Positions 3,001 to 33,853 of a DNA stretch of 64,000 bases are shown here, one piece after another. The notes beneath the pieces were generated by a model. The model saw nothing but the letters and a program-made list of their open reading frames with translations, searched no databases and was not told the origin of the DNA. A program made the translations under genes and the position numbers. The first letter of the stretch is position 1. Every line of letters begins with the position of its first letter. Source of the stretch: Auanema rhodensis (lineage: Eukaryota; Animalia; Nematoda); assembly GCA_964057225.1 (NCBI GenBank), contig OZ059900.1:8432001-8496000 (forward strand), given 5' to 3'.

Positions 3001-4278
3001 TGTAAAAATAGTCAAAGTTTATGAATCCTGAATTTCAAATCCATACCTCAAAGGGTCTGATCAAAACATACAGTTTTCACATGTTTTGTACCCAAAATCG
3101 TTGAATATATGGCGTTTTGAGCATAAAAAGGCCCATATTTCAATCAGTTTCGATATTCGTGCAAAATACACCTATAACAACATTCTATGACAGTATTCCA
3201 TACATTTAGTCGTTTTAGAAGAAAAAAATATGCTTAAGATCAAAAGTTTGACTGATTTAGCCAAAATGTCCTTCAAACCCCAAAAAACCAATAATTCTTG
3301 ATATTTTCGGTCCTTTTTGACCAAAGTGGTTAAAATTGAACATATATATGTAAAAATAGTCAAAGTTTATGAATCCTGAATTTCAAATCCATATCTCAAA
3401 GGGTCTGATCAAAACATACAGTTTTCACATGTTTTGTACCCAAAATCGTTGAATATATGGCGTTTTGAGCATAAAAAGGCCCATATTTCAATCAGTTTTG
3501 ATATTCGTGCAAAATACACCTATATGAACATTCTTTGACAGTATTTCATACATTTAGTCGTTTTAGAAGAAAAAAATATGCTTAAGATCAAAAGTTTGAC
3601 TGATTTTGCCAAAATGCCCTTCAAACCCCAAAAAACCAATAATTCTTGATATTTTCGGTCCTTTTTGACCAAAGTGGTTAAAATTGGACATATATATGTG
3701 AAAATAGTCGAAGTTCATGAATTCTGAATTTCAAATCCATATCTCAAAGGGTCTGATCAAAACATACAGTTTTCACATGTTTTGTACCCAAAATCGTTGA
3801 ATATATGGCGTTTTGAGCATAAAAAGGCCCATATATCAATCAGTTTTGATATTCGTGCAAAATACACCTATATGAACATTCTATGACAGTATTTCATACA
3901 TTTAGTCGTTTTAGAAGAAAAAAATATGCTTAAGATCAAAAGTTTGACTGATTTAGCCAAAATGCCCTTCAAACCCCAAAAAACCAATAATTCTTGATAT
4001 TTTCGGTCTTTTTTGACCAAAGTGGTTACAATTAAACATATATATGTAAAAATAGTCAAAGTTTATGAATCCTGAATTTCAAATCCATATCTCAAAGGGT
4101 CTGATCAAAACATACAGTTTTCACATGTTTTGTACCCAAAATCGTTGAATATATGGCGTTTTGAGCATAAAAAGGCCCATATTTCAATCAGTTTTGATAT
4201 TTCTGCAAAATACACCTATATGAACATTCTATGACAGTATTTCATACATTTAGTCGTTTTAGAAGAAAAAAATATGCT
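1..4278 (+). repeat. Left satellite block, orientation A (CATATTTCAATC... on + strand), ~12.3 monomers
   Basis: Head-to-tail monomers. The last monomer starts at 4178 and is cut at monomer position 101 (...AAAATATGCT, 4278). One 349-bp monomer (ACCAAAATTGG near 1236). Confidence 0.95.
4261..4278 (+). repeat. Left copy of 18-bp direct repeat AGAAGAAAAAAATATGCT flanking the inverted block (TSD-like)
   Basis: Monomer positions 84-101 are present immediately before the left junction and again immediately after the right junction. The sequence is directly visible; the TSD interpretation is inference. Confidence 0.6.
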
Positions 4279-4287
4279 AACAAATAA
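4279..4287. other. 9-bp junction filler AACAAATAA
   Basis: Between ...AATATGCT (orientation A) and CACGAATATC (orientation B). It does not continue either arm (expected TAAGATC and GTATTTTG respectively). It could also be read as a 1-bp deletion plus a 7-bp filler. Confidence 0.85.
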
Positions 4288-7200
4288 CACGAATATCGAA
4301 ACTGATTGAAATATGGGCCTTTTTATGCTCAAAACGCCATATATTCAACGATTTTGGGTACAAAACATGTGAAAACTGTATGTTTTGATCAGACCCTTTG
4401 AGATATGGATTTGAAATTCAGGATTCATAAACTTTGACTATTTTCACATATATATGTTCAATTTTAACCACTTTGGTCAAAAAGGACCGAAAATATCAAG
4501 AATTATTGGTTTTTTGGGGTTTGAAGGACATTTTGGCTAAATCAGTCAAACTTTTGATCTTAAGCATATTTTTTTCTTCTAAAACGACTAAATGTATGAA
4601 ATACTGTCATAGAATGTTCATATAGGTGTATTTTGCACGAATATCGAAACTGATTGAAATATGGGCCTTTTTATGCTCAAAACGCCATATATTCAACGAT
4701 TTTGGGTACAAAACATGTGAAAACTGTATGTTTTGATCAGACCCTTTGAGATATGGATTTGAAATTCAGGATTCATAAACTTTGACTATTTTCACATATA
4801 TATGTTCAATTTTAACCACTTTGGTCAAAAAGGACCGAAAATATCAAGAATTATTGGTTTTTTGGGGTTTGAAGGGCATTTTGGCTAAATCAGTCAAACT
4901 TTTGGCATATTTTTTTCTTCTAAAACGACTAAATGTTAGGAATACTGTCATAGAATGTTGATATAGGTGTATTTTGCACGGATATCAAAACTGATTGAAA
5001 TATGGGCCTTTTTATGCTCAAAACGCCATATATTCAACAATTTTGGGTACAAAACATGTGAAAACTGTATGTTTTGATCAGACCCTTTGAGATATGGATT
5101 TGAAATTCAGGATTCATAAACTTTGACTATTTTCACATATATATGTTCAATTTTAACCACTTTGGTCAAAAAGGACCGAAAATATCAAGAATTATTGGTT
5201 TTTTGGGGTTTGAAGGACATTTTGGCTAAATCAGTCAAACTTTTGATCTTAAGCATATTTTCTTCTTCTAAAACGACTAAATGTATGAAATACTGTCATA
5301 AAATGTTCATATAGGTGTATTTTGCACGAATATCAAAACTGATTGAAATATGGGCCTTTTTATGCTCAAAACGCCATATATTCAACGATTTTGGGTACAA
5401 AACATGTGAAAACTGTATGTTTTGATCAGACCCTTTGAGATATGGATTTGAAGTTCAGGATTCATAAACTTTGACTATTTTCACATATATATGTTCAATT
5501 TTAACCACTTTGGTCAAAAAGGACCGAAAATATCAAGAATTATTGGTTTTTTGGGGTTTGAAGGGCATTTTGGCTAAATCAGTCAAACTTTTGGCATATT
5601 TTTTTCTTCTAAAACGACTAAATGTTAGGAATACTGTCATAGAATGTTGATATAGGTGTATTTTGCACGAATATCGAAACTGATTGAAATATGGGCCTTT
5701 TTATGCTCAAAACGCCATATATTCAACGATTTTGGGTACAAAACATGTGAAAACTGTATGTTTTGATCAGACCCTTTGAGATATGGATTTGAAATTCAGG
5801 ATTCATAAACTTTGACTATTTTCACATATATATGTTCAATTTTAACCACTTTGGTCAAAAAGGACCGAAAATATCAAGAATTATTGGTTTTTTGGGGTTT
5901 GAAGGACATTTTGGCTAAATCAGTCAAACTTTTGATCTTAAGCATATTTTTTTCTTCTAAAACGACTAAATGTATGAAATACTGTCATAGAATGTTCATA
6001 TAGGTGTATTTTGCACGAATATCGAAACTGATTGAAATATGGGCCTTTTTATGCTCAAAACGCCATATATTCAACGATTTTGGGTACAAAACATGTGAAA
6101 ACTGTATGTTTTGATCAGACCCTTTGAGATATGGATTTGAAATTCAGGATTCATAAACTTTGACTATTTTCACATATATATGTTCAATTTTAACCACTTT
6201 GGTCAAAAAGGACCGAAAATATCAAGAATTATTGGTTTTTTGGGGTTTGAAGGGCATTTTGGCTAAATCAGTCAAACTTTTGGCATATTTTTTTCTTCTA
6301 AAACGACTAAATGTTAGGAATACTGTCATAGAATGTTGATATAGGTGTATTTTGCACGGATATCAAAACTGATTGAAATATGGGCCTTTTTATGCTCAAA
6401 ACGCCATATATTCAACAATTTTGGGTACAAAACATGTGAAAACTGTATGTTTTGATCAGACCCTTTGAGATATGGATTTGAAATTCAGGATTCATAAACT
6501 TTGACTATTTTCACATATATATGTTCAATTTTAACCACTTTGGTCAAAAAGGACCGAAAATATCAAGAATTATTGGTTTTTTGGGGTTTGAAGGACATTT
6601 TGGCTAAATCAGTCAAACTTTTGATCTTAAGCATATTTTCTTCTTCTAAAACGACTAAATGTATGAAATACTGTCATAAAATGTTCATATAGGTGTATTT
6701 TGCACGAATATCAAAACTGATTGAAATATGGGCCTTTTTATGCTCAAAACGCCATATATTCAACGATTTTGGGTACAAAACATGTGAAAACTGTATGTTT
6801 TGATCAGACCCTTTGAGATATGGATTTGAAGTTCAGGATTCATAAACTTTGACTATTTTCACATATATATGTTCAATTTTAACCACTTTGGTCAAAAAGG
6901 ACCGAAAATATCAAGAATTATTGGTTTTTTGGGGTTTGAAGGGCATTTTGGCTAAATCAGTCAAACTTTTGGCATATTTTTTTCTTCTAAAACGACTAAA
7001 TGTTAGGAATACTGTCATAGAATGTTGATATAGGTGTATTTTGCACGAATATCGAAACTGATTGAAATATGGGCCTTTTTATGCTCAAAACGCCATATAT
7101 TCAACGATTTTGGGTACAAAACATGTGAAAACTGTATGTTTTGATCAGACCCTTTGAGATATGGATTTGAAATTCAGGATTCATAAACTTTGACTATTTT

Positions 7201-8110
7201 CACATATATATGTTCAATTTTAACCACTTTGGTCAAAAAGGACCGAAAATATCAAGAATTATTGGTTTTTTGGGGTTTGAAGGACATTTTGGCAAAATCA
7301 GTCAAACTTTTGATCTTAAGCATATTTTTTTCTTCTAAAACGACTAGATGTATGGAATACTGTCATAGAATGTTGATATAGGTGTATTTTGCACGAATAT
7401 CGAAACTGATTGAAATATGGGCCTTTTTATGCTCAAAACGCCATATATTCAACGATTTTGGGTACAAAACATGTGAAAACTGTATGTTTTGATCAAACCC
7501 TTTGAGATATGGATTTGAAATTCAGGATTCATAAACTTTGACTATTTTCACATATATATGTTCAATTTTAACCACTTTGGTCAAAAAGGACCGAAAATAT
7601 CAAGAATTATTGGTTTTTTGGGGTTTGAAGGGCATTTTGGCTAAATCAGTCAAACTTTTGGCATATTTTTTTCTTCTAAAACGACTAAATGTTAGGAATA
7701 CTGTCATAGAATGTTGATATAGGTGTATTTTGCACGGATATCAAAACTGATTGAAATATGGGCCTTTTTATGCTCAAAACGCCATATATTCAACAATTTT
7801 GGGTACAAAACATGTGAAAACTGTATGTTTTGATCAGACCCTTTGAGATATGGATTTGAAATTCAGGATTCATAAACTTTGACTATTTTCACATATATAT
7901 GTTCAATTTTAACCACTTTGGTCAAAAAGGACCGAAAATATCAAGAATTATTGGTTTTTTGGGGTTTGAAGGACATTTTGGCAAAATCAGTCAAACTTTT
8001 GATCTTAAGCATATTTTTTTCTTCTAAAACGACTAGATGTATGGAATACTGTCATAGAATGTTGATATAGGTGTATTTTGCACGAATATCGAAACTGATT
8101 GAAATATGGG
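4288..8110 (-). repeat. 689-bp dimeric higher-order repeat (348 + 341 bp), partly organised as a 1378-bp tetramer
   Basis: Intact ORFs at 4434, 5123, 5812, 6501, 7190 and 7879 (spacing 689). Alternate monomers read AAACTTTTGGCATAT instead of AAACTTTTGATCTTAAGCATAT. Markers CACGGATATC and GAAGTTCAGG recur at 1378-bp spacing. Confidence 0.9.
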
Positions 8111-8453
8111 CCTTTTTATGCTCAAAACGCCATATATTCAACGATTTTGGGTACAAAACATGTGAAAACTGTATGTTTTGATCAAACCCTTTGAGATATG
8201 GATTTGAAATTCAGGATTCATAAACTTCGACTATTTCTACAAATATATGTCCAATTTTAACCACTTTGGTCAAAAAGGACCGAAAATATCAAGAATTATT
8301 GGTTTTTTGGGGTTTGAAGGGCATTTTGGCAAAATCAGACAAACTTTTGATCTTAAGCATATTTTTTTCTTCTAAAACGACTAAATGTATGAAATACTGT
8401 CAAAGAATGTTCATATAGGTGTATTTTGCACGAATATCGAAACTGATTGAAAT

Positions 8454-8626
8454 ATGGGCCTTTTTATGCTCAAAACGCCATATATTCAACGATTTTGGGT
8501 ACAAAACATGTGAAAACTGTATGTTTTGAACAGACCCTTTGAGATATGGATTTGAAAATCAGGATTCATAAACTTTGACTATTTTTACATATATATGTTC
8601 AATTTTAACCACTTTGGTCAAAAAGG
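8454..8626 (-). repeat. 173-bp truncated monomer (175-bp deletion)
   Basis: Novel junction GGTCAAAAAGG-ATGGGCC at 8626/8627; ATGGGCC recurs after 173 bp. Confidence 0.92.
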
Positions 8627-10004
8627 ATGGGCCTTTTTATGCTCAAAACGCCATATATTCAACGATTTTGGGTACAAAACATGTGAAAACTGTATGTTTT
8701 GATCAGACCCTTTGAGATATGGATTTGAAATTCAGGATTCATAAACTTTGACTATTTTCACATATATATGTTCAATTTTAACCACTTTGGTCAAAAAGGA
8801 CCGAAAATATCAAGAATTATTGGTTTTTTGGGGTTTGAAGGGCATTTTGGCTAAATCAGTCAATCTTTTGGCATATTTTTTTCTTCTAAAACGACTAAAT
8901 GTTAGGAACACTGTCATAGAATGTTGATATAGGTGTATTTTGCACGAATATCAAAACTGATTGAAATATGGGCCTTTTTATGCTCAAAACGCCATATATT
9001 CAACAATTTTGGGTACAAAACATGTGAAAACTGTATGTTTTGATCAGACCCTTTGAGATATGGATTTGAAATTCAGGATTCATAAACTTTGACTATTTTC
9101 ACATATATATGTTCAATTTTAACCACTTTGGTCAAAAAGGACCGAAAATATCAAGAATTATTGGTTTTTTGGGGTTTGAAGGACATTTTGGCTAAATCAG
9201 TCAAACTTTTGATCTTAAGCATATTTTCTTCTTCTAAAACGACTAAATGTATGAAATACTGTCAAAGATTGTTCATATAGGTGTATTTTGCACGAATATC
9301 AAAACTGATTGAAATATGGGCCTTTTTATGCTCAAAACGCCATATATTCAACGATTTTGGGTACAAAACATGTGAAAACTGTATGTTTTGATCAGACCCT
9401 TTGAGATATGGATTTGAAATTCAGGATTCATAAACTTTGACTATTTTCACATATATATGTTCAATTTTAACCACTTTGGTCAAAAAGGACCGAAAATATC
9501 AAGAATTATTGGTTTTTTGGGGTTTGAAGGGCATTTTGGCTAAATCAGTCAAACTTTTGATCTTAAGCATATTTTCTTCTTCTAAAACGACTAAATGTAT
9601 GAAATACTGTCATAAAATGTTCATATAGGTGTATTTTGCACGAATATCAAAACTGATTGAAATATGGGCCTTTTTATGCTCAAAACGCCATATATTCAAC
9701 GATTTTGGGTACAAAACATGTGAAAACTGTATGTTTTGATCAGACCCTTTGAGATATGGATTTGAAATTCAGGATTCATAAACTTTGACTATTTTCACAT
9801 ATATATGTTCAATTTTAACCACTTTGGTCAAAAAGGACCGAAAATATCAAGAATTATTGGTTTTTTGGGGTTTGAAGGGCATTTTGGCTAAATCAGTCAA
9901 ACTTTTGGCATATTTTTTTCTTCTAAAACGACTAAATGTTAGGAACACTGTCATAGAATGTTGATATAGGTGTATTTTGCACGAATATCAAAACTGATTG
10001 AAAT

Positions 10005-10177
10005 ATGGGCCTTTTTATGCTCAAAACGCCATATATTCAACAATTTTGGGTACAAAACATGTGAAAACTGTATGTTTTGCTCAGACCCTTTGAGATATGG
10101 ATTTGAAATTCAGGATTCATAAACTTTGACTATTTTCACATATATATGTTCAATTTTAACCACTTTGGTCAAAAAGG
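10005..10177 (-). repeat. 173-bp truncated monomer
   Basis: Same AAAAAGG-ATGGGCC junction at 10177/10178. Confidence 0.92.
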
Positions 10178-13100
10178 ATGGGCCTTTTTATGCTCAAAAC
10201 GCCATATATTCAACGATTTTGGGTACAAAACATGTGAAAACTGTATGTTTTGATCAGACCCTTTGAGATATGGATTTGAAATTCAGGATTCATAAACTTT
10301 GACTATTTTCACATATATATGTTCAATTTTAACCACTTTGGTCAAAAAGGACCGAAAATATCAAGAATTATTGGTTTTTTGGGGTTTGAAGGACATTTTG
10401 GCTAAATCAGTCAAACTTTTGATCTTAAGCATATTTTCTTCTTCTAAAACGACTAAATGTATGAAATACTGTCATAAAATGTTCATATAGGTGTATTTTG
10501 CACGAATATCAAAACTGATTGAAATATGGGCCTTTTTATGCTCAAAACGCCATATATTCAACGATTTTGGGTACAAAACATGTGAAAACTGTATGTTTTG
10601 ATCAGACCCTTTGAGATATGGATTTGAAATTCAGGATTCATAAACTTTGACTATTTTCACATATATATGTTCAATTTTAACCACTTTGGTCAAAAAGGAC
10701 CGAAAATATCAAGAATTATTGGTTTTTTGGGGTTTGAAGGGCATTTTGGCTAAATCAGTCAAACTTTTGGCATATTTTTTTCTTCTAAAACGACTAAATG
10801 TTAGGAACACTGTCATAGAATGTTGATATAGGTGTATTTTGCACGAATATCAAAACTGATTGAAATATGGGCCTTTTTATGCTCAAAACGCCATATATTC
10901 AACAATTTTGGGTACAAAACATGTGAAAACTGTATGTTTTGATCAGACCCTTTGAGATATGGATTTGAAATTCAGGATTCATAAACTTTGACTATTTTCA
11001 CATATATATGTTCAATTTTAACCACTTTGGTCAAAAAGGACCGAAAATATCAAGAATTATTGGTTTTTTGGGGTTTGAAGGACATTTTGGCTAAATCAGT
11101 CAAACTTTTGATCTTAAGCATATTTTCTTCTTCTAAAACGACTAAATGTATGAAATACTGTCAAAGATTGTTCATATAGGTGTATTTTGCACGAATATCA
11201 AAACTGATTGAAATATGGGCCTTTTTATGCTCAAAACGCCATATATTCAACGATTTTGGGTACAAAACATGTGAAAACTGTATGTTTTGATCAGACCCTT
11301 TGAGATATGGATTTGAAATTCAGGATTCATAAACTTTGACTATTTTCACATATATATGTTCAATTTTAACCACTTTGGTCAAAAAGGACCGAAAATATCA
11401 AGAATTATTGGTTTTTTGGGGTTTGAAGGGCATTTTGGCTAAATCAGTCAAACTTTTGATCTTAAGCATATTTTCTTCTTCTAAAACGACTAAATGTATG
11501 AAATACTGTCATAAAATGTTCATATAGGTGTATTTTGCACGAATATCAAAACTGATTGAAATATGGGCCTTTTTATGCTCAAAACGCCATATATTCAACG
11601 ATTTTGGGTACAAAACATGTGAAAACTGTATGTTTTGATCAGACCCTTTGAGATATGGATTTGAAATTCAGGATTCATAAACTTTGACTATTTTCACATA
11701 TATATGTTCAATTTTAACCACTTTGGTCAAAAAGGACCGAAAATATCAAGAATTATTGGTTTTTTGGGGTTTGAAGGGCATTTTGGCTAAATCAGTCAAA
11801 CTTTTGGCATATTTTTTTCTTCTAAAACGACTAAATGTTAGGAACACTGTCATAGAATGTTGATATAGGTGTATTTTGCACGAATATCAAAACTGATTGA
11901 AATATGGGCCTTTTTATGCTCAAAACGCCATATATTCAACAATTTTGGGTACAAAACATGTGAAAACTGTATGTATTGATCAGACCCTTTGAGATATGGA
12001 TTTGAAATTCAGGATTCATAAACTTTGACTATTTTTACATATTTATGTCCAATTTTAACCACTTTGGTCAAAAAGGACCGAAAATATCAAGAATTATTGG
12101 TTTTTTGGGGTTTGAAGGACATTTTGGCTAAATCAGTCAAACTTTTGATCTTAAGCATATTTTCTTCTTCTAAAACGACTAAATGTATGAAATACTGTCA
12201 AAGATTGTTCATATAGGTGTATTTTGCACGAATATCAAAACTGATTGAAATATGGGCCTTTTTATGCTCAAAACGCCATATATTCAACGATTTTGGGTAC
12301 AAAACATGTGAAAACTGTATGTTTTGATCAGACCCTTTGAGATATGGATTTGAAATTCAGGATTCATAAACTTTGACTATTTTCACATATATATGTTCAA
12401 TTTTAACCACTTTGGTCAAAAAGGACCGAAAATATCAAGAATTATTGGTTTTTTGGGGTTTGAAGGACATTTTGGCTAAATCAGTCAAACTTTTGATCTT
12501 AAGCATATTTTTTTCTTCTAAAACGACTAAATGTATGAAATACTGTCATAGAATGTTCATATAGGTGTATTTTGCACGAATATCGAAACTGATTGAAATA
12601 TGGGCCTTTTTATGCTCAAAACGCCATATATTCAACGATTTTGGGTACAAAACATGTGAAAACTGTATGTTTTGATCAGACCCTTTGAGATATGGATTTG
12701 AAATTCAGGATTCATAAACTTTGACTATTTTCACATATATATGTTCAATTTTAACCACTTTGGTCAAAAAGGACCGAAAATATCAAGAATTATTGGTTTT
12801 TTGGGGTTTGAAGGACATTTTGGCTAAATCAGTCAAACTTTTGATCTTAAGCATATTTTTTTCTTCTAAAACGACTAAATGTATGAAATACTGTCATAGA
12901 ATGTTCATATAGGTGTATTTTGCACGAATATCGAAACTGATTGAAATATGGGCCTTTTTGTGCTCAAAACGCCATATATTCAACGATTTTGGGTACAAAA
13001 CATGTGAAAACTGTATGTTTTGATCAGACCCTTTGAGATATGGATTTGAAATTCAGGATTCATAAACTTTGACTATTTTCACATATATATGTTCAATTTT

Positions 13101-16100: not shown

Positions 16101-19100
16101 GTGAAAACTGTATGTTTTGATCAGACCCTTTGAGATATGGATTTGAAGTTCAGGATTCATAAACTTTGACTATTTTCACATATATATGTTCAATTTTAAC
16201 CACTTTGGTCAAAAAGGACCGAAAATATCAAGAATTATTGGTTTTTTGGGGTTTGAAGGGCATTTTGGCTAAATCAGTCAAACTTTTGGCATATTTTTTT
16301 CTTCTAAAACGACTAAATGTTAGGAATACTGTCATAGAATGTTGATATAGGTGTATTTTGCACGAATATCGAAACTGATTGAAATATGGGCCTTTTTATG
16401 CTCAAAACGCCATATATTCAACGATTTTGGGTACAAAACATGTGAAAACTGTATGTTTTGATCAGACCCTTTGAGATATGGATTTGAAATTCAGGATTCA
16501 TAAACTTTGACTATTTTCACATATATATGTTCAATTTTAACCACTTTGGTCAAAAAGGACCGAAAATATCAAGAATTATTGGTTTTTTGGGGTTTGAAGG
16601 ACATTTTGGCAAAATCAGTCAAACTTTTGATCTTAAGCATATTTTTTTCTTCTAAAACGACTAGATGTATGGAATACTGTCATAGAATGTTGATATAGGT
16701 GTATTTTGCACGAATATCGAAACTGATTGAAATATGGGCCTTTTTATGCTCAAAACGCCATATATTCAACGATTTTGGGTACAAAACATGTGAAAACTGT
16801 ATGTTTTGATCAAACCCTTTGAGATATGGATTTGAAATTCAGGATTCATAAACTTCGACTATTTCTACAAATATATGTCCAATTTTAACCACTTTGGTCA
16901 AAAAGGACCGAAAATATCAAGAATTATTGGTTTTTTGGGGTTTGAAGGGCATTTTGGCAAAATCAGACAAACTTTTGATCTTAAGCATATTTTTTTCTTC
17001 TAAAACGACTAAATGTATGAAATACTGTCAAAGAATGTTCATATAGGTGTATTTTGCACGAATATCGAAACTGATTGAAATATGGGCCTTTTTATGCTCA
17101 AAACGCCATATATTCAACGATTTTGGGTACAAAACATGTGAAAACTGTATGTTTTGAACAGACCCTTTGAGATATGGATTTGAAAATCAGGATTCATAAA
17201 CTTTGACTATTTTTACATATATATGTTCAATTTTAACCACTTTGGTCAAAAAGGATGGGCCTTTTTATGCTCAAAACGCCATATATTCAACGATTTTGGG
17301 TACAAAACATGTGAAAACTGTATGTTTTGATCAGACCCTTTGAGATATGGATTTGAAATTCAGGATTCATAAACTTTGACTATTTTCACATATATATGTT
17401 CAATTTTAACCACTTTGGTCAAAAAGGACCGAAAATATCAAGAATTATTGGTTTTTTGGGGTTTGAAGGACATTTTGGCTAAATCAGTCAAACTTTTGAT
17501 CTTAGGCATATTTTCTTCTTCTAAAACGACTAAATGTATGAAATACTGTCATAAAATGTTCATATAGGTGTATTTTGCACGAATATCAAAACTGATTGAA
17601 ATATGGGCCTTTTTATGCTCAAAACGCCATATATTCAACGATTTTGGGTACAAAACATGTGAAAACTGTATGTTTTGATCAGACCCTTTGAGATATGGAT
17701 TTGAAATTCAGGATTCATAAACTTTGACTATTTTCACATATATATGTTCAATTTTAACCACTTTGGTCAAAAAGGACCGAAAATATCAAGAATTATTGGT
17801 TTTTTGGGGTTTGAAGGGCATTTTGGCTAAATCAGTCAAACTTTTGGCATATTTTTTTCTTCTAAAACGACTAAATGTTAGGAACACTGTCATAGAATGT
17901 TGATATAGGTGTATTTTGCACGAATATCAAAACTGATTGAAATATGGGCCTTTTTATGCTCAAAACGCCATATATTCAACAATTTTGGGTACAAAACATG
18001 TGAAAACTGTATGTTTTGATCAGACCCTTTGAGATATGGATTTGAAATTCAGGATTCATAAACTTTGACTATTTTCACATATATATGTTCAATTTTAACC
18101 ACTTTGGTCAAAAAGGACCGAAAATATCAAGAATTATTGGTTTTTTGGGGTTTGAAGGACATTTTGGCTAAATCAGTCAAACTTTTGATCTTAAGCATAT
18201 TTTCTTCTTCTAAAACGACTAAATGTATGAAATACTGTCAAAGATTGTTCATATAGGTGTATTTTGCACGAATATCGAAACTGATTGAAATATGGGCCTT
18301 TTTATGCTCAAAACGCCATATATTCAACGATTTTGGGTACAAAACATGTGAAAACTGTATGTTTTGATCAGACCCTTTGAGATATGGATTTGAAATTCAG
18401 GATTCATAAACTTTGACTATTTTCACATATATATGTTCAATTTTAACCACTTTGGTCAAAAAGGACCGAAAATATCAAGAATTATTGGTTTTTTGGGGTT
18501 TGAAGGGCATTTTGGCTAAATCAGTCAAACTTTTGATCTTAAGCATATTTTCTTCTTCTAAAACGACTAAATGTATGAAATACTGTCATAAAATGTTCAT
18601 ATAGGTGTATTTTGCACGAATATCAAAACTGATTGAAATATGGGCCTTTTTATGCTCAAAACGCCATATATTCAACGATTTTGGGTACAAAACATGTGAA
18701 AACTGTATGTTTTGATCAGACCCTTTGAGATATGGATTTGAAATTCAGGATTCATAAACTTTGACTATTTTCACATATATATGTTCAATTTTAACCACTT
18801 TGGTCAAAAAGGACCGAAAATATCAAGAATTATTGGTTTTTTGGGGTTTGAAGGGCATTTTGGCTAAATCAGTCAAACTTTTGGCATATTTTTTTCTTCT
18901 AAAACGACTAAATGTTAGGAACACTGTCATAGAATGTTGATATAGGTGTATTTTGCACGAATATCAAAACTGATTGAAATATGGGCCTTTTTATGCTCAA
19001 AACGCCATATATTCAACAATTTTGGGTACAAAACATGTGAAAACTGTATGTTTTGCTCAGACCCTTTGAGATATGGATTTGAAATTCAGGATTCATAAAC

Positions 19101-21170
19101 TTTGACTATTTTCACATATATATGTTCAATTTTAACCACTTTGGTCAAAAAGGACCGAAAATATCAAGAATTATTGGTTTTTTGGGGTTTGAAGGACATT
19201 TTGGCTAAATCAGTCAAACTTTTGATCTTAAGCATATTTTCTTCTTCTAAAACGACTAAATGTATGAAATACTGTCAAAGATTGTTCATATAGGTGTATT
19301 TTGCACGAATATCAAAACTGATTGAAATATGGGCCTTTTTATGCTCAAAACGCCATATATTCAACGATTTTGGGTACAAAACATGTGAAAACTGTATGTT
19401 TTGATCAGACCCTTTGAGATATGGATTTGAAATTCAGGATTCATAAACTTTGACTATTTTCACATATATATGTTCAATTTTAACCACTTTGGTCAAAAAG
19501 GACCGAAAATATCAAGAATTATTGGTTTTTTGGGGTTTGAAGGACATTTTGGCTAAATCAGTCAAACTTTTGATCTTAAGCATATTTTTTTCTTCTAAAA
19601 CGACTAAATGTATGAAATACTGTCATAGAATGTTCATATAGGTGTATTTTGCACGAATATCGAAACTGATTGAAATATGGGCCTTTTTATGCTCAAAACG
19701 CCATATATTCAACGATTTTGGGTACAAAACATGTGAAAACTGTATGTTTTGATCAGACCCTTTGAGATATGGATTTGAAATTCAGGATTCATAAACTTTG
19801 ACTATTTTCACATATATATGTTCAATTTTAACCACTTTGGTCAAAAAGGACCGAAAATATCAAGAATTATTGGTTTTTTGGGGTTTGAAGGACATTTTGG
19901 CTAAATCAGTCAAACTTTTGATCTTAAGCATATTTTTTTCTTCTAAAACGACTAAATGTATGAAATACTGTCATAGAATGTTCATATAGGTGTATTTTGC
20001 ACGAATATCGAAACTGATTGAAATATGGGCCTTTTTGTGCTCAAAACGCCATATATTCAACGATTTTGGGTACAAAACATGTGAAAACTGTATGTTTTGA
20101 TCAGACCCTTTGAGATATGGATTTGAAATTCAGGATTCATAAACTTTGACTATTTTCACATATATATGTTCAATTTTAACCACTTTGGTCAAAAAGGACC
20201 GAAAATATCAAGAATTATTGGTTTTTTGGGGTTTGAAGGGCATTTTGGCTAAATCAGTCAAACTTTTGGCATATTTTTTTCTTCTAAAACGACTAAATGT
20301 TAGGAATACTGTCATAGAATGTTGATATAGGTGTATTTTGCACGGATATCAAAACTGATTGAAATATGGGCCTTTTTATGCTCAAAACGCCATATATTCA
20401 ACAATTTTGGGTACAAAACATGTGAAAACTGTATGTTTTGATCAGACCCTTTGAGATATGGATTTGAAATTCAGGATTCATAAACTTTGACTATTTTCAC
20501 ATATATATGTTCAATTTTAACCACTTTGGTCAAAAAGGACCGAAAATATCAAGAATTATTGGTTTTTTGGGGTTTGAAGGACATTTTGGCTAAATCAGTC
20601 AAACTTTTGATCTTAAGCATATTTTCTTCTTCTAAAACGACTAAATGTATGAAATACTGTCATAAAATGTTCATATAGGTGTATTTTGCACGAATATCAA
20701 AACTGATTGAAATATGGGCCTTTTTATGCTCAAAACGCCATATATTCAACGATTTTGGGTACAAAACATGTGAAAACTGTATGTTTTGATCAGACCCTTT
20801 GAGATATGGATTTGAAATTCAGGATTCATAAACTTTGACTATTTTCACATATATATGTTCAATTTTAACCACTTTGGTCAAAAAGGACCGAAAATATCAA
20901 GAATTATTGGTTTTTTGGGGTTTGAAGGGCATTTTGGCTAAATCAGTCAAACTTTTGGCATATTTTTTTCTTCTAAAACGACTAAATGTTAGGAATACTG
21001 TCATAGAATGTTGATATAGGTGTATTTTGCACGAATATCAAAACTGATTGAAATATGGGCCTTTTTATGCTCAAAACGCCATATATTCAACAATTTTGGG
21101 TACAAAACATGTGAAAACTGTATGTTTTGATCAGACCCTTTGAGATATGGATTTGAAATTCAGGATTCAT
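10178..21170 (-). repeat. Intra-array duplication, ~3.9-kb segment repeated at offset 7077 (approx. 10178-14090 and 17255-21170)
   Basis: ORF variants pair in order: 10299/17376, 10988/18065, 11336/18413, 12025/19102, 12373/19450, 12721/19798, 13410/20487. The rare variant CTTTTTGTGC occurs at ~12960 and ~20037. Ends are approximate. Confidence 0.8.
17082..17254 (-). repeat. 173-bp truncated monomer
   Basis: Same junction at 17254/17255, with the same linked SNPs as the 8454 copy. Confidence 0.92.
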
Positions 21171-21499
21171 AAACTTTGACTATTTTCACATATATATGTC
21201 CAATTTTAACCACTTTGGTCAAAAAGGACCGAAAATATCAAGAAGTATTGGTTTTTTGGGGTTTGAAGGGCATTTTGGCAAAATCAGACAAACTTTTGAT
21301 CTTAAGCATATTTTTTTCTTCTAAAACGACTAAATGTATGAAATACTGTCAAAGAATGTTCATATAGGTGTATTTTGCACGAATATCAAAACTGATTGAA
21401 ATATGGGCCTTTTTATGCTCAAAACGCCATATATTCAACAATTTTGGGTACAAAACATGTGAAAACTGTATGTTTTGATCAGACCCTTTGAGATATGGA

Positions 21500-24400
21500 T
21501 TTGAAATTCAGGATTCATAAACTTTGACTATTTTCACATATATATGTTCAATTTTAACCACTTTGGTCAAAAAGGACCGAAAATATCAAGAATTATTGGT
21601 TTTTTGGGGTTTGAAGGACATTTTGGCTAAATCAGTCAAACTTTTGATCTTAAGCATATTTTCTTCTTCTAAAACGACTAAATGTATGAAATACTGTCAT
21701 AAAATGTTCATATAGGTGTATTTTGCACGAATATCAAAACTGATTGAAATATGGGCCTTTTTATGCTCAAAACGCCATATATTCAACGATTTTGGGTACA
21801 AAACATGTGAAAACTGTATGTTTTGATCAGACCCTTTGAGATATGGATTTGAAATTCAGGATTCATAAACTTTGACTATTTTCACATATATATGTTCAAT
21901 TTTAACCACTTTGGTCAAAAAGGACCGAAAATATCAAGAATTATTGGTTTTTTGGGGTTTGAAGGGCATTTTGGCTAAATCAGTCAAACTTTTGGCATAT
22001 TTTTTTCTTCTAAAACGACTAAATGTTAGGAATACTGTCATAGAATGTTGATATAGGTGTATTTTGCACGAATATCAAAACTGATTGAAATATGGGCCTT
22101 TTTATGCTCAAAACGCCATATATTCAACAATTTTGGGTACAAAACATGTGAAAACTGTATGTTTTGATCAGACCCTTTGAGATATGGATTTGAAATTCAG
22201 GATTCATAAACTTTGACTATTTTCACATATATATGTTCAATTTTAACCACTTTGGTCAAAAAGGACCGAAAATATCAAGAATTATTGGTTTTTTGGGGTT
22301 TGAAGGACATTTTGGCTAAATCAGTCAAACTTTTGATCTTAAGCATATTTTCTTCTTCTAAAACGACTAAATGTATGAAATACTGTCATAGAATGTTCAT
22401 ATAGGTGTATTTTGCACGAATATCAAAACTGATTGAAATATGGGCCTTTTTATGCTCAAAACGCCATATATTCAACGATTTTGGGTACAAAACATGTGAA
22501 AACTGTATGTTTTGATCAGACCCTTTGAGATATGGATTTGAAATTCAGGATTCATAAACTTTGACTATTTTCACATATATATGTTCAATTTTAACCACTT
22601 TGGTCAAAAAGGACCGAAAATATCAAGAATTATTGGTTTTTTGGGGTTTGAAGGACATTTTGGCTAAATCAGTCAAACTTTTGATCTTAAGCATATTTTT
22701 TTCTTCTAAAACGACTAAATGTATGAAATACTGTCATAGAATGTTCATATAGGTGTATTTTGCACGAATATCAAAACTGATTGAAATATGGGCCTTTTTA
22801 TGCTCAAAACGCCATATATTCAACGATTTTGGGTACAAAACATGTGAAAACTGTATGTTTTGATCAGACCCTTTGAGATATGGATTTGAAATTCAGGATT
22901 TATAAACTTTGACTATTTTTACATATATATGTTCAATTTTAACCACTTTGGTCAAAAAGGACCGAAAATATCAAGAATTATTGGTTTTTTGGGGATTGAA
23001 GGGCATTTTGGCAAAATCAGTCAAACTTTTGATCTTAAGCATATTTTTTTCTCCTAAAACGACTAGATGTATGGAATACTGTCATAGAATGTTGATATAG
23101 GTGTATTTTGCACGAATATCGAAACTGATTGAAATATGGGCCTTTTTATGCTCAAAACGCCATATATTCAACGATTTTGGGTACAAAACATGTGAAAACT
23201 GTATGTTTTGATCAAACCCTTTGAGATATGGATTTGAAATTCAGGATTCATAAACTTCGACTATTTCTACAAATATATGTCCAATTTTAACCACTTTGGT
23301 CAAAAAGGACCGAAAATATCAAGAAGTATTGGTTTTTTGGGGTTTGAAGGGCATTTTGGCAAAATCAGACAAACTTTTGATCTTAAGCATATTTTTTTCT
23401 TCTAAAACGACTAAATGTATGAAATACTGTCAAAGAATGTTCATATAGGTGTATTTTGCACGAATATCAAAACTGATTGAAATATGGGCCTTTTTATGCT
23501 CAAAACGCCATATATTCAACAATTTTGGGTACAAAACATGTGAAAACTGTATGTTTTGATCAGACCCTTTAAAGATATGGATTTGAAATTCAGGATTCAT
23601 AAACTTCGACTATTTCTACATATATATGTCCAATTTTAACCACTTTGGTCAAAAAGGACCGAAAATATCAAAAATTATTGGTTTCTTGGGGTTTGAAGGG
23701 CATTTTGGCAAAATCAGTCAAACTTTTGATCTTAAGCATATTTTTTTCTTCTAAAACGACTAAATGTTAGGAATACTGTCATAGAATGTTGATATAGGTG
23801 TATTTTGCACGAATATCAAAACTGATTGAAATATGGGCCTTTTTAGGCTCAAAACGCCATATATTCAACGATTTTGGGTACAAAACATGTGAAAACTGTA
23901 TGTTTTGATCAGACCCTTTGAGATATGGATTTGAAATTCAGGATTCATAAACTTTGACTATTTTCACATATATATGTTCAATTTTAACCACTTTGGTCAA
24001 AAAGGACCGAAAATATCAAGAATTATTGGTTTTTTGAGGTTTGAAGGGCATTTTGGCTAAATCAGTCAAACTTTTGATCTTAAGCATATTTTTTTCTTCT
24101 AAAACGACTAAATGTATGAAATACTGTCATAGAATGTTCATATAGGTGTATTTTGCACGAATATCAAAACTGATTGAAATATGGGCCTTTTTATGCTCAA
24201 AACGCCATATATTCAACGATTTTGGGTACAAAACATGTGAAAACTGTATGTTTTGATCAGACCCTTTGAGATATGGATTTGAAATTCAGGATTCATAAAC
24301 TTTGACTATTTTTACATATATATGTCCAATTTTAACCACTTTGGTCAGAAAGGACCGAAAATATCAAGAATTATTGGTTTTTTGGGGTTTGAAGGGCATT

Positions 24401-27400
24401 TTGGCAAAATCAGTCAAACTTTTGATCTTAAGCATATTTTTTTCTTCTAAAACGACTAAATGTTAGGAATACTGTCATAGAAGGTTGATATAGGTGTATT
24501 TTGCACGAATATCAAAACTGATTGAAATATGGGCCTTTTTATGCTCAAAACGCCATATATTCAACGATTTTGGGTACAAAACATGTGAAAACTGTATGTT
24601 TTGATCAGACTCTTTGAGATATGGATTTGAAATTCAGGATTCATAAACTTTGACTATTTTCACATATATATGTTCAATTTTAACCACTTTGGTCAAAAAG
24701 GACCGAAAATATCAAGAATTATTGGTTTTTTGGGGTTTGAAGGGCATTTTGGCTAAATCAGTCAAACTTTTGATCTTAAGCATATTTTTTTCTTCTAAAA
24801 CGACTAAATGTATGGAAGACTGTCATAGAATGTTCATATAGGTGTATTTTGCACGAATATCAAAACTGATTGAAATATGGGCCTTTTTATGCTCAAAACG
24901 CCATATATTCAACGATTTTGGGTACAAAACATGTGAAAACTGTATGTTTTGATCAGACCCTTTGAGATATGGATTTGAAATTCAGGATTCATAAACTTTG
25001 ACTATTTTTACATATTTATGTCCAATTTTAACCACTTTGGTCAAAAAGGACCAAAAATATCAAGAATTATTGGTTTTTTGGGTATTGAAGGGCATTTTGG
25101 CAAAATCAGTCAAACTTTTGATCTTAAGCATATTTTTTTCTTCTAAAACGACTAAATGTTAGGAATACTGTCATAGAATGTTGATATAGGTGTATTTTGC
25201 ACGAATATCAAAACTGATTGAAATATGGGCCTTTTTATGCTCAAAACGCCATATATTCAACGATTTTGGGTACAAAACATGTGAAAACTGTATGTTTTGA
25301 TCAGACCCTTTGAGATATGGATTTGAAATTCAGGATTCATAAACTTTGACTATTTTCACATATATATGTTCAATTTTAACCACTTTGGTCAAAAAGGACC
25401 GAAAATATCAAGAATTATTGGTTTTTTGAGGTTTGAAGGGCATTTTGGCTAAATCAGTCAAACTTTTGATCTTAAGCATATTTTTTTCTTCTAAAACGAC
25501 TAAATGTATGAAATACTGTCATAGAATGTTCATATAGGTGTATTTTGCACGAATATCAAAACTGATTGAAATATGGGCCTTTTTATGCTCAAAACGCCAT
25601 ATATTCAACGATTTTGGGTACAAAACATGTGAAAACTGTATGTTTTCATCAGACCCTTTGAGATATGGATTTGAAATTCAGGATTCATAAACTTTGACTA
25701 TTTTTACATATATATGTCCAATTTTAACCACTTTGGTCAAAAAGGACCGAAAATATCAAGAATTATTGGTTTTTCGGGGTTTGAAGGGCATTTTGGCAAA
25801 ATCAGTCAAACTTTTGATCTTAAGCATATTTTTTTCTTCTAAAACGACTAAATGTTAGGAATACTGTCATAGAATGTTGATATAGGTGTATTTTGCACGA
25901 ATATCAAAACTGATTGAAATATGGGCCTTTTTATGCTCAAAACGCCATATATTCAACGATTTTGGGTACAAAACATGTGAAAACTGTATGTTTTGATCAG
26001 ACTCTTTGAGATATGGATTTGAAATTCAGGATTCATAAACTTTGACTATTTTCACATATATATGTTCAATTTTAACCACTTTGGTCAAAAAGGACCAAAA
26101 ATATCAAGAATTATTGGTTTTTTGGGTATTGAAGGGCATTTTGGCAAAATCAGTCAAACTTTTGATCTTAAGCATATTTTTTTCTTCTAAAACGACTAAA
26201 TGTATGGAATACTGTCATAGAATGTTGATATAGGTGTATTTTGCACGAATATCGAAACTGATTGAAATATGGGCCTTTTTATGCTCAAAACGCCATATAT
26301 TCAACGATTTTGGGTACAAAACATGTGAAAACTGTATGTTTTGACCAGACCCTTTGAGATATGGATTTGAAATTCAGGATTCATAAACTTTGACTATTTT
26401 CACATATATATGTTCAATTTTAACCACTTTGGTCAAAAAGGACCAAAAATATCAAGAATTATTGGTTTTTTGGGTATTGAAGGGCATTTTGGCAAAATCA
26501 GTCAAACTTTTGATCTTAAGCATATTTTTTTCTTCTAAAACGACTAAATGTTAGGAATACTGTCATAGAATGTTGATATAGGTGTATTTTGCACGAATAT
26601 CAAAACTGATTGAAATATGGGCCTTTTTATGCTCAAAACGCCATATATTCAACGATTTTGGGTACAAAACATGTGAAAACTGTATGTTTTGATCAGACTC
26701 TTTGAGATATGGATTTGAAATTCAGGATTCATAAACTTTGACTATTTTCACATATATATGTTCAATTTTAACCACTTTGGTCAAAAAGGACCGAAAATAT
26801 CAAGAATTATTGGTTTTTTGGGGTTTGAAGGACATTTTGGCTAAATCAGTCAAACTTTTGATCTTAAGCATATTTTCTTCTTCTAAAACGACTAAATGTA
26901 TGAAATACTGTCATAAAATGTTCATATAGGTGTATTTTGCACGAATATCAAAACTGATTGAAATATGGGCCTTTTTATGCTCAAAACGCCATATATTCAA
27001 CGATTTTGGGTACAAAACATGTGAAAACTGTATGTTTTGATCAGACCCTTTGAGATATGGATTTGAAATTCAGGATTCATAAACTTTGACTATTTTCACA
27101 TATATATGTTCAATTTTAACCACTTTGGTCAAAAAGGACCGAAAATATCAAGAATTATTGGTTTTTTGGGGTTTGAAGGGCATTTTGGCTAAATCAGTCA
27201 AACTTTTGGCATATTTTTTTCTTCTAAAACGACTAAATGTTAGGAATACTGTCATAGAATGTTGATATAGGTGTATTTTGCACGAATATCAAAACTGATT
27301 GAAATATGGGCCTTTTTATGCTCAAAACGCCATATATTCAACAATTTTGGGTACAAAACATGTGAAAACTGTATGTTTTGATCAGACCCTTTGAGATATG

Positions 27401-30283
27401 GATTTGAAATTCAGGATTCATAAACTTTGACTATTTTCACATATATATGTTCAATTTTAACCACTTTGGTCAAAAAGGACCGAAAATATCAAGAATTATT
27501 GGTTTTTTGGGGTTTGAAGGACATTTTGGCTAAATCAGTCAAACTTTTGATCTTAAGCATATTTTCTTCTTCTAAAACGACTAAATGTATGAAATACTGT
27601 CATAGAATGTTCATATAGGTGTATTTTGCACGAATATCAAAACTGATTGAAATATGGGCCTTTTTATGCTCAAAACGCCATATATTCAACGATTTTGGGT
27701 ACAAAACATGTGAAAACTGTATGTTTTGATCAGACCCTTTGAGATATGGATTTGAAATTCAGGATTCATAAACTTTGACTATTTTCACATATATATGTTC
27801 AATTTTAACCACTTTGGTCAAAAAGGACCGAAAATATCAAGAATTATTGGTTTTTTGGGGTTTGAAGGACATTTTGGCTAAATCAGTCAAACTTTTGATC
27901 TTAAGCATATTTTTTTTTTCTAAAACGACTAAATGTATGAAATACTGTCATAGAATGTTCATATAGGTGTATTTTGCACGAATATCAAAACTGATTGAAA
28001 TATGGGCCTTTTTATGCTCAAAACGCCATATATTCAACGATTTTGGGTACAAAACATGTGAAAACTGTATGTTTTGATCAGACCCTTTGAGATATGGATT
28101 TGAAATTCAGGATTTATAAACTTTGACTATTTTTACATATATATGTTCAATTTTAACCACTTTGGTCAAAAAGGACCGAAAATATCAAGAATTATTGGTT
28201 TTTTGGGGATTGAAGGGCATTTTGGCAAAATCAGTCAAACTTTTGATCTTAAGCATATTTTTTTCTCCTAAAACGACTAGATGTATGGAATACTGTCATA
28301 GAATGTTGATATAGGTGTATTTTGCACGAATATCGAAACTGATTGAAATATGGGCCTTTTTATGCTCAAAACGCCATATATTCAACGATTTTGGGTACAA
28401 AACATGTGAAAACTGTATGTTTTGATCAAACCCTTTGAGATATGGATTTGAAATTCAGGATTCATAAACTTCGACTATTTCTACAAATATATGTCCAATT
28501 TTAACCACTTTGGTCAAAAAGGACCGAAAATATCAAGAAGTATTGGTTTTTTGGGGTTTGAAGGGCATTTTGGCAAAATCAGACAAACTTTTGATCTTAA
28601 GCATATTTTTTTCTTCTAAAACGACTAAATGTATGAAATACTGTCAAAGAATGTTCATATAGGTGTATTTTGCACGAATATCAAAACTGATTGAAATATG
28701 GGCCTTTTTATGCTCAAAACGCCATATATTCAACAATTTTGGGTACAAAACATGTGAAAACTGTATGTTTTGATCAGACCCTTTAAAGATATGGATTTGA
28801 AATTCAGGATTCATAAACTTCGACTATTTCTACATATATATGTCCAATTTTAACCACTTTGGTCAAAAAGGACCGAAAATATCAAAAATTATTGGTTTCT
28901 TGGGGTTTGAAGGGCATTTTGGCAAAATCAGTCAAACTTTTGATCTTAAGCATATTTTTTTCTTCTAAAACGACTAAATGTTAGGAATACTGTCATAGAA
29001 TGTTGATATAGGTGTATTTTGCACGAATATCAAAACTGATTGAAATATGGGCCTTTTTAGGCTCAAAACGCCATATATTCAACGATTTTGGGTACAAAAC
29101 ATGTGAAAACTGTATGTTTTGATCAGACCCTTTGAGATATGGATTTGAAATTCAGGATTCATAAACTTTGACTATTTTCACATATATATGTTCAATTTTA
29201 ACCACTTTGGTCAAAAAGGACCGAAAATATCAAGAATTATTGGTTTTTTGAGGTTTGAAGGGCATTTTGGCTAAATCAGTCAAACTTTTGATCTTAAGCA
29301 TATTTTTTTCTTCTAAAACGACTAAATGTATGAAATACTGTCATAGAATGTTCATATAGGTGTATTTTGCACGAATATCAAAACTGATTGAAATATGGGC
29401 CTTTTTATGCTCAAAACGCCATATATTCAACGATTTTGGGTACAAAACATGTGAAAACTGTATGTTTTGATCAGACCCTTTGAGATATGGATTTGAAATT
29501 CAGGATTCATAAACTTTGACTATTTTTACATATATATGTCCAATTTTAACCACTTTGGTCAAAAAGGACCGAAAATATCAAGAATTATTGGTTTTTTGGG
29601 GTTTGAAGGGCATTTTGGCAAAATCAGTCAAACTTTTGATCTTAAGCATATTTTTTTCTTCTAAAACGACTAAATGTTAGGAATACTGTCATAGAATGTT
29701 GATATAGGTGTATTTTGCACGAATATCAAAACTGATTGAAATATGGGCCTTTTTATGCTCAAAACGCCATATATTCAACGATTTTGGGTACAAAACATGT
29801 GAAAACTGTATGTTTTGATCAGACTCTTTGAGATATGGATTTGAAATTCAGGATTCATAAACTTTGACTATTTTCACATATATATGTTCAATTTTAACCA
29901 CTTTGGTCAAAAAGGACCAAAAATATCAAGAATTATTGGTTTTTTGGGTATTGAAGGGCATTTTGGCAAAATCAGTCAAACTTTTGATCTTAAGCATATT
30001 TTTTTCTTCTAAAACGACTAAATGTATGGAATACTGTCATAGAATGTTGATATAGGTGTATTTTGCACGAATATCGAAACTGATTGAAATATGGGCCTTT
30101 TTATGCTCAAAACGCCATATATTCAACGATTTTGGGTACAAAACATGTGAAAACTGTATGTTTTGACCAGACCCTTTGAGATATGGATTTGAAATTCAGG
30201 ATTCATAAACTTTGACTATTTTCACATATATATGTTCAATTTTAACCACTTTGGTCAAAAAGGACCGAAAATATCAAGAATTA
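21500..30283 (-). repeat. 5214-bp (15-monomer) tandem duplication; second copy lacks 4 monomers and ends at the right junction
   Basis: ORF variant pairs 21524/26738, 22213/27427, 22561/27775, 22909/28123. The insertion CCCTTTAAAGAT occurs at ~23570 and ~28784. The pair 26042/29864 has offset 3822 = 5214 - 4x348. Ends are approximate. Confidence 0.82.
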
Positions 30284-30301
30284 AGAAGAAAAAAATATGC
30301 T
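30284..30301 (+). repeat. Right copy of 18-bp direct repeat AGAAGAAAAAAATATGCT (TSD-like)
   Basis: Begins at the first base after the inverted block ends (30283); identical to 4261-4278. Confidence 0.6.
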
Positions 30302-33300: not shown

Positions 33301-33335
33301 TGAATATATGGCGTTTTGAGCATAAAAAGGCCCAT

Positions 33336-33508
33336 CCTTTTTGACCAAAGTGGTTAAAATTGAACATATATATGTAAAAATAGTCAAAGTTTATGAATCC
33401 TGATTTTCAAATCCATATCTCAAAGGGTCTGTTCAAAACATACAGTTTTCACATGTTTTGTACCCAAAATCGTTGAATATATGGCGTTTTGAGCATAAAA
33501 AGGCCCAT
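33336..33508 (+). repeat. 173-bp truncated monomer in orientation A
   Basis: Junction GGCCCAT-CCTTTTTGACC at 33335/33336, the reverse complement of the junctions in the inverted block. ORF spacing 33023 to 33544 = 348+173. Confidence 0.92.
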
Positions 33509-33853
33509 ATTTCAATCAGTTTCGATATTCGTGCAAAATACACCTATATGAACATTCTTTGACAGTATTTCATACATTTAGTCGTTTTAGAAGAAAAAAA
33601 TATGCTTAAGATCAAAAGTTTGACTGATTTTGCCAAAATGCCCTTCAAACCCCAAAAAACCAATAATTCTTGATATTTTCGGTCCTTTTTGACCAAAGTG
33701 GTTAAAATTGGACATATATATGTAAAAATAGTCAAAGTTTATGAATCCTGAATTTCAAATCCATATCTCAAAGGGTCTGATCAATACATACAGTTTTCAC
33801 ATGTTTTGTACCCAAAATCGTTGAATATATGGCGTTTTGAGCATAAAAAGGCC

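Follow-up and report, generated by a model that had tools for sequence, protein, structure and literature searches.

How does a tandem satellite array come to hold a block of its own repeat in the opposite orientation, by a flip in place or by the arrival of a block from elsewhere? The question is raised by a 64-kb window (the whole stretch of 64,000 nucleotides analyzed here, positions 8,432,001 to 8,496,000 of contig OZ059900.1 from the nematode Auanema rhodensis), which is a single AT-rich tandem array with a 348-bp unit and ~30.5% G+C. A first, sequence-only reading of this DNA had pointed to a 26-kb inverted satellite block within the array and had taken it as possibly inserted rather than flipped, with an 18-bp direct repeat at its two sides that resembles a target-site duplication (TSD). 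The block itself was confirmed, and its limits were refined by GC skew, which changes sign near 4.3 kb and 30.3 kb, and by BLAST with the monomer consensus to positions 4288-30283, a length of 25,996 bp. The strand-switch structure is genuine. The history that we tentatively prefer, at somewhat less than an even chance, is an insertion-like placement, in which a sub-array of 26.0 kb, native to another domain of the same satellite family, XR-1, was set backwards within what had been a single host monomer.

The comparison of the consensus with the window gave a complete tiling by satellite monomers. The 27-nt fluorescence in situ hybridization (FISH) probe for XR-1 (X-retain) matched exactly at 48 sites, including 4603-4629, and the strand of these matches tracked the orientation of the array. 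The probe is printed in the Methods of a preprint on DNA elimination in Auanema rhodense, in which XR-1 is a repeat of the X chromosome that is kept in somatic cells (bioRxiv 10.64898/2026.08.27.747507). By this exact match, the array of the window is identified as XR-1 of Auanema rhodense, X-linked and somatically retained. The satellites in the DNA-elimination papers on Mesorhabditis and Caenorhabditis showed no match to the 348-bp satellite. A transposable element was rejected as an explanation, since the whole window contains no open reading frame of at least 90 aa and the block is made of plain satellite monomers. A known RNA family was rejected as well: the search in Rfam returned only sub-threshold matches to plant-miRNA precursors at 4124-4369, with at most 81 bits where the gathering score is 249, and these matches at the left junction are an artefact of the head-to-head arms, which could form a hairpin.

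The inverted block and its junctions

The anatomy of the locus is given by the following features, in which consensus position 1 is the A of AGAAGAAAAAAATATGCT and equals monomer position 84 in the numbering of the earlier reading:

1-4278, plus strand: left flank, 12.3 monomers of the 348-bp satellite, with its last base at consensus position 18
4261-4278, plus strand: left 18-bp direct repeat, AGAAGAAAAAAATATGCT, consensus positions 1-18
4279-4287, no strand assigned: 9-bp filler, AACAAATAA, at the head-to-head junction, aligning to neither flank nor block
4288-30283, minus strand: inverted block, 25,996 bp, ~74.7 monomers, running from position 76 to position 293 on its own strand
30284-30301, plus strand: right 18-bp direct repeat, joined blunt to the block, without microhomology
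30284-64000, plus strand: right flank, 348-bp monomers from consensus position 1

On the minus strand, the left end of the block (4288) lies at consensus position 293 and its right end (30283) at position 76. The phases of the flanks, read before as 101 and 84, were recovered as consensus positions 18 and 1, and the 18-mer was found on both sides of the block, at 4261-4278 and 30284-30301, as had been described. Its two copies are identical (18/18) and cannot be extended, the neighbouring bases mismatching on both sides. The removal of 4279-30301 does restore an intact monomer, and the 348-bp spacing is regained. On the left side, nine filler bases separate the 18-bp repeat from the block, whereas on the right side repeat and block are in direct contact. 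The left and the right junction strings each occur once in the 64-kb window.

No microhomology was found at either junction, the right one being blunt and the left one carrying nine non-matching bases. Therefore, end joining fits these junctions better than microhomology-mediated template switching, as in fork stalling and template switching (FoSTeS) or microhomology-mediated break-induced replication (MMBIR). Microhomology provided by inverted repeats within the monomer was rejected, since positions 13-21 pair with positions 249-257 and the junction lies at position 293. The filler AACAAATAA has one site per monomer with at most one mismatch, at forward positions 70-78 (AACCAATAA, 8/9). This site straddles the other breakpoint of the block, 75|76, a placement with a chance of roughly 5-10%. 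The resemblance would fit one repair event with all ends together; it does not choose between the models, because every monomer holds the template at positions 70-78. The head-to-head spacers measure ~82 nt at the left junction and 75 nt at the right junction. Inverted repeats that are kilobases long and 97% identical, with spacers as short as these, are usually unstable.

The junctions were also analyzed in sequencing runs. Nine words were sampled from 4215-4350, of which ~3.3 are expected to be junction-specific (39 of the 106 31-mers overlap filler bases). All nine are present in run X1 (9/9), compared with 4-6/9 in five further runs of this organism and 2-4/9 in runs of other organisms. 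The left junction seems to be absent from, or unassembled in, the other samples of the species, and the pattern fits a young or polymorphic junction, which may be confined to one sample. As a separate observation, related species seem to share the satellite, since some of the words also occur in runs of several other organisms.

Additionally, the contigs of four runs were compared with the right-junction stretch 29950-30650 (701 letters). A contig of X1 joins 30649 (forward position 18) to 30066 (reverse position 293), with AACAAATAA in between, at a depth of 835.7, which is not convertible to a copy number (the repeat sums to ~10^7, and Hi-C-type ligation joints are found at comparable depth). 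This joint is the left junction with its exact filler, and the left junction is real in the X1 sample. X1 consists of Illumina-type short reads, in which the TruSeq adaptor and numerous ligation joints at GATC occur; its contigs are separate from the assembly, and it is possibly the source sample. In run X5, a different joint was detected (at 30073 and 30369), in which forward sequence to about position 88 (..TTCTTGATAT) is joined to reverse CGAAACTGATTGAAATA (from about position 284 downward), the two sharing ATAT. The breakpoints of this joint lie within ~10 bp of the block ends (76 and 293), and its presence means that other polarity switches with other phases exist. Many joints at GATC sites, e.g., from 30308 to 30439/30474, were seen only in the two runs from 2023, X1 and X5. 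Their appearance is that of Hi-C ligation products, and chimeric joints in these two runs therefore need care.

Block and flanks compared

In its composition, the block is foreign to the flank on either side, and this holds as far as the junctions themselves. Three variants were found only in the block within the window: the 341-bp monomer already mentioned in the earlier reading (20 monomers, every one of them inside the block), G at position 8 (G8) and TA at positions 332-333. Monomers of the A129 and T309 types, which characterise the right flank, are nearly missing from the block. Most block monomers have 0-1 mismatch to another block monomer and at least 4 to any flank monomer. In a tree of 176 full monomers, the label of block or flank changed 10 times, against 48 times when the labels were shuffled, and the borders between the two compartments are sharp to one or two monomers. 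The same tree test was applied to same-strand halves of the right flank (12 vs 28) and to halves of the block (9 vs 17). The 341-bp monomer is the product of a clean deletion of TTAAGAT at positions 18-24 (e.g., 4581-4921). The left edge of this deletion, 17|18, lies 1 bp from the break of the left flank, 18|19, inside the palindrome CTTAAG, and the site may be a fragile spot or a coincidence.

A diagonal scan at the level of monomers revealed abundant direct segmental duplications within the block and within the flanks. No inverted run of at least two monomers at no more than two mismatches each was found linking the block to the flanks in the window, and a recent inverted copy of the neighbourhood was rejected on this basis. 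Within the window, no forward source copy of the block was found either.

Three further features of the right flank are required for the comparison of the flanks with each other and with the block:

30284-33588, plus strand: R1 sub-array, the first 3.3 kb of the right flank, A129-type, with a 3-monomer period (1044 bp, 30284-33335)
33068-33588, plus strand: rare 521-bp monomer, in which consensus positions 95-268 are duplicated
33854-38131, plus strand: segment X, partner of the left-flank duplication, at an offset of 33,853 bp

The left flank (1-4278) is 99.56% identical to segment X, with 19 mismatches and no gaps, compared with ~97.5% at other registers. Thirteen of these mismatches fall in the first 4034 bp and six are clustered at 4195-4242; from about 4035 on, the register that the left flank matches is shifted forward by one monomer. 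When positions 4035-4278 of the left flank were joined to 30302-30591 of the right flank, the joined sequence showed 2 mismatches in 534 bp to 38236-38769, followed by background divergence. The type of monomer that starts the right flank (at most 1 mismatch) follows the type that ends the left flank at 4/6 of the closest boundaries, vs 22/106 forward boundaries overall. From these sequence comparisons, it is probable that the flanks were once neighbours, a relation favoured by a factor of roughly three. Without 4279-30301, the left flank and segment X would form a tandem duplication with an offset of 7,830 bp (21 x 348 + 522). The divergence between the left flank and segment X is 0.3%, and that between internal duplicates of the block is ~0%.

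The restored monomer had been said to resemble the types at ~31250 and ~38380. This likeness was found, with 2 mismatches in 300 bp to 31196-31495 and 38330-38629, among others; as evidence it does not discriminate, since the rival join of the block end to the right flank matches equally well.

Segmental duplications within the array are also marked by variants of monomer length. Monomers of 352 bp start at 49950, 54826, 55874, and 61794, those of 350 bp at 45422 and 45772, and those of 349 bp at 1128, 34981, 23404, and 28618. The variants are caused by an ATAT insertion at position 129, a TC insertion at position 229, or a single T insertion at position 111 or 179. A 20-monomer segmental duplication links 51694-54477 with 58662-61445, where 8 consecutive monomers show 3 mismatches. 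The array is assembled from nested multi-monomer duplications.

Insertion, inversion and longer histories

A clean two-break inversion predicts that the block starts at position 19 and ends at position 348. The observed ends lie at positions 76 and 293, and a clean flip in place is excluded because the junction phases miss the prediction by 57 and 55 bp. A two-break inversion with ~55 bp lost at each joint is compatible with the phase data. In the mirror test for a staggered break, in which the flank ends were compared with the opposite block ends, 10/291 and 6/293 mismatches were counted, and the fold-back mirror test across each junction gave 8/293 and 5/273, on a background with a median of 6 mismatches per 293. 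Mirror identity is thus at background at both junctions, and a recent fold-back or staggered-break inversion is excluded.

In the placement that we tentatively prefer, repair would have been started by a chromosome break in the host XR-1 array. During this repair the block would have been placed as a unit, either as a captured linear or extrachromosomal fragment or as a copy from another part of the XR-1 arrays. Both joints would have been made by end joining, blunt on the right and with the 9-nt filler on the left, with host ends overlapping by 18 bp. The flanks would then once have been contiguous, and the block would have come from elsewhere. In the weighing of the models, this placement gains from the foreign character of the block with its sharp borders, from the roughly threefold preference for flank continuity, from the 18-bp overlap (by a few-fold) and from a junction that may be young. 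The earlier suggestion of an insertion rather than a flip holds in so far as the phases miss a clean flip, the block is foreign, and the joined flanks form one lineage. It is qualified by the left flank, whose 99.6% identical copy at 33854-38131 ends its homology at the block and hints at a complex history.

A staggered break had been part of that suggestion; a duplication of the 18 bp by fill-in of staggered ends, a true TSD, was not confirmed. Analytically, two random break phases give an overlap of 0-18 bp with a chance of 19/348 (5.5%), and an offset within +/-18 bp with a chance of 37/348 (10.6%). An overlap of this size falls within chance for a tandem array, as had been cautioned in the same reading, which warned that any overlap of break phases in such an array mimics a TSD. 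On the window sequence alone, a target-site duplication is indistinguishable from a chance overlap. Every monomer of a tandem array resembles an empty site. A true TSD is improbable in our estimate. An excised circle had been named as a possible source of the block. This was not supported either, and a circular origin is rated below a staggered-break TSD, because the block, which runs from position 76 to position 293, would need another 130 bp to make up a whole number of monomers. A broader proposal, that satellite blocks of tens of kilobases move within or between XR-1 arrays without a transposase, a fragment or circle being captured at a staggered break that leaves a true 18-bp TSD, is considered distinctly improbable. 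If it were true, strand switches in satellite arrays would often be insertions and not inversions.

Several observations weigh against an inserted block. The 18-bp overlap, with its chance of 6-11%, is suggestive and not significant, and a stagger of 18 nt is unusual for spontaneous breaks. No empty-site allele or donor copy was encountered, though the data allowed no search for either. The two gaps of 57 and 55 bp are small and alike, which is expected in ~3% of cases on random insertion phases. The local joins do not separate insertion from inversion: the best matches showed 4, 7, and 4 mismatches per 500 bp for the insertion joint between the flanks and the two inversion joints, respectively, with lost bases masked. 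The homology between the left flank and segment X stops no more than ~250 bp from the block; for a duplication and an insertion unrelated to each other, this coincidence has a chance of ~8%. Moreover, the block is close kin of the host array. The rare 521-bp monomer of the right flank has a joint that also occurs three times in the block (8374-8887, 9925-10445, and 17002-17522), and a 419-bp tract of the right flank that includes the 268|95 joint (33204-33622) is identical, as the reverse complement, to 8340-8758 and 16968-17386 of the block, which could have arisen by gene conversion between the inverted arrays or by common descent. A block monomer (29315-29662) is likewise identical to flank monomers at 84 and 33937. 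Among the few pieces listed out of ~98,000, none bridged 30283|30284, a result that does not speak against the right junction.

The same observations feed the alternatives. An in-place inversion with two breaks, sealed by end joining with the loss of ~57 bp (positions 19-75) and ~55 bp (positions 294-348) and the addition of the 9-nt filler, would make the 18-bp overlap coincidental, and we regard it as possible if rather unlikely. It accounts for the small and similar gaps; the 8/9 match of the filler to positions 70-78, at the other breakpoint, is expected if four ends met in one event; and the rare 521-bp monomer is common to the block and the right flank. In the tree test, same-strand sub-blocks of the array are likewise compartmentalised. 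Strand switches are also common in satellites, with hundreds in the human beta satellite (betaSat) and HSat3, where they look stochastic (bioRxiv 10.64898/2026.07.22.740206). By contrast, the start of the block, compared with the continuation of the left-flank lineage, showed background divergence, and the likeness expected of former neighbours was not found: the block ends are no nearer to their supposed ex-neighbours than background. A young inversion would need both breakpoints to coincide with sharp domain borders that already existed, whereas an old one should have left its junction words in other samples of the species, from which they are apparently missing. A further point against the inversion is the 99.6% twin of the left flank across the block, with its homology ending at the break.

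This last point is a coincidence on every simple model, and it keeps complex histories alive. A rearrangement in several steps or by replication, in which the 18 bp would be meaningless, could take the form of a template switch that yields a duplication, an inverted segment and a duplication, segment X being copied, then a reversed distant template, with a return 7.83 kb back; it could equally be a tandem duplication of a 33.85-kb unit in which the inverted block was already present, or two nested inversions. Such a history is unlikely in our judgement. It would tie the duplication to the block boundary, given that the left-flank copy of 33854-38131 loses its homology within ~250 bp of the block, it agrees with the 7,830-bp tandem period left by removal of the block, and the depth of the X1 junction (835.7) is compatible with more than one copy. 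Against it, the junctions lack microhomology, one being blunt and the other with filler, which is atypical of microhomology-mediated template switching; the window holds no forward source of the block; and, with a divergence of 0.3% between left flank and segment X and ~0% between block duplicates, one recent event for everything is not obvious. An assembly artefact, in which the assembler gave the block the wrong orientation within a long satellite array, is highly improbable. Long near-identical arrays are error-prone in assembly, and the right junction was not seen among the read pieces listed, but the left junction with the exact 9-nt filler is present in short-read contigs separate from the assembly (X1 possibly being the same sample), and the variants and internal structure of the block are its own, unlike those expected of a mis-oriented piece of the local array.

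Relation to known systems

To our knowledge, strand switches in satellites are almost always called inversions without analysis at the level of bases. Phase bookkeeping, together with the haplotypes of monomer variants, can separate a flip in place from an imported block, and here the evidence leans to an imported one. Taken as a single locus, the structure is of an ordinary kind, and its mechanism is unproven. If small overlaps of the flanks proved to be a rule across the genome, they would establish that large satellite blocks can be moved by way of repair. Such a route bears on the homogenisation of arrays, on the stability of long inverted repeats, and on the evolution of the repeat-rich Auanema X chromosome, for which an influence of the repeats on its unusual behaviour in meiosis has been proposed. 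The locus is a well-resolved new example in a nematode X-linked repeat and not a new kind of structure.

For inversions that arise through staggered breaks, as in Drosophila, the model predicts inverted copies of the duplicated stretch, one at either end of the inverted segment. A short duplication together with an inverted segment is common to those inversions and to the present locus; here, by contrast, the repeat is direct and lies outside the block, and the mirror tests gave background values. Fold-back palindromic duplications share head-to-head joints with short spacers, whereas the arms of the XR-1 junctions lack mirror identity, with mismatches at background level (8/293 and 5/273).

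In a survey of human satellites, hundreds of strand switches per array type were treated as by-products of array expansion, and one inverted higher-order repeat (HOR) array had moved between chromosomes (bioRxiv 10.64898/2026.07.22.740206). The XR-1 block is like the switches in human alpha-satellite HOR, betaSat and HSat3 arrays in that the same satellite is reversed inside the array, maybe variably between samples, without a transposon. Unlike them, it lies in a nematode X repeat, its joints are resolved to the base (one blunt, one with a 9-nt filler), its flanks overlap by 18 bp, and its variants are foreign to the flanks.

The Rsp-like satellite of Drosophila simulans and D. mauritiana has been inserted into arrays of the 1.688 satellite, in some cases with a 32-bp duplication of the host monomer (PMC7403614). 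These insertions were attributed to break repair, with extrachromosomal circular DNA (eccDNA) and template switching discussed as routes (PMC7403614). As at the XR-1 locus in the reading preferred here, a satellite block there was inserted into an array by break repair, in some cases between two copies of a short stretch of the host monomer. The Drosophila insertions differ in that they involve a different satellite, small clusters, and microhomology of 4-7 bp, whereas the block described here belongs to the same family as its host array, spans 26 kb, is reversed, and is joined to its flanks without microhomology.

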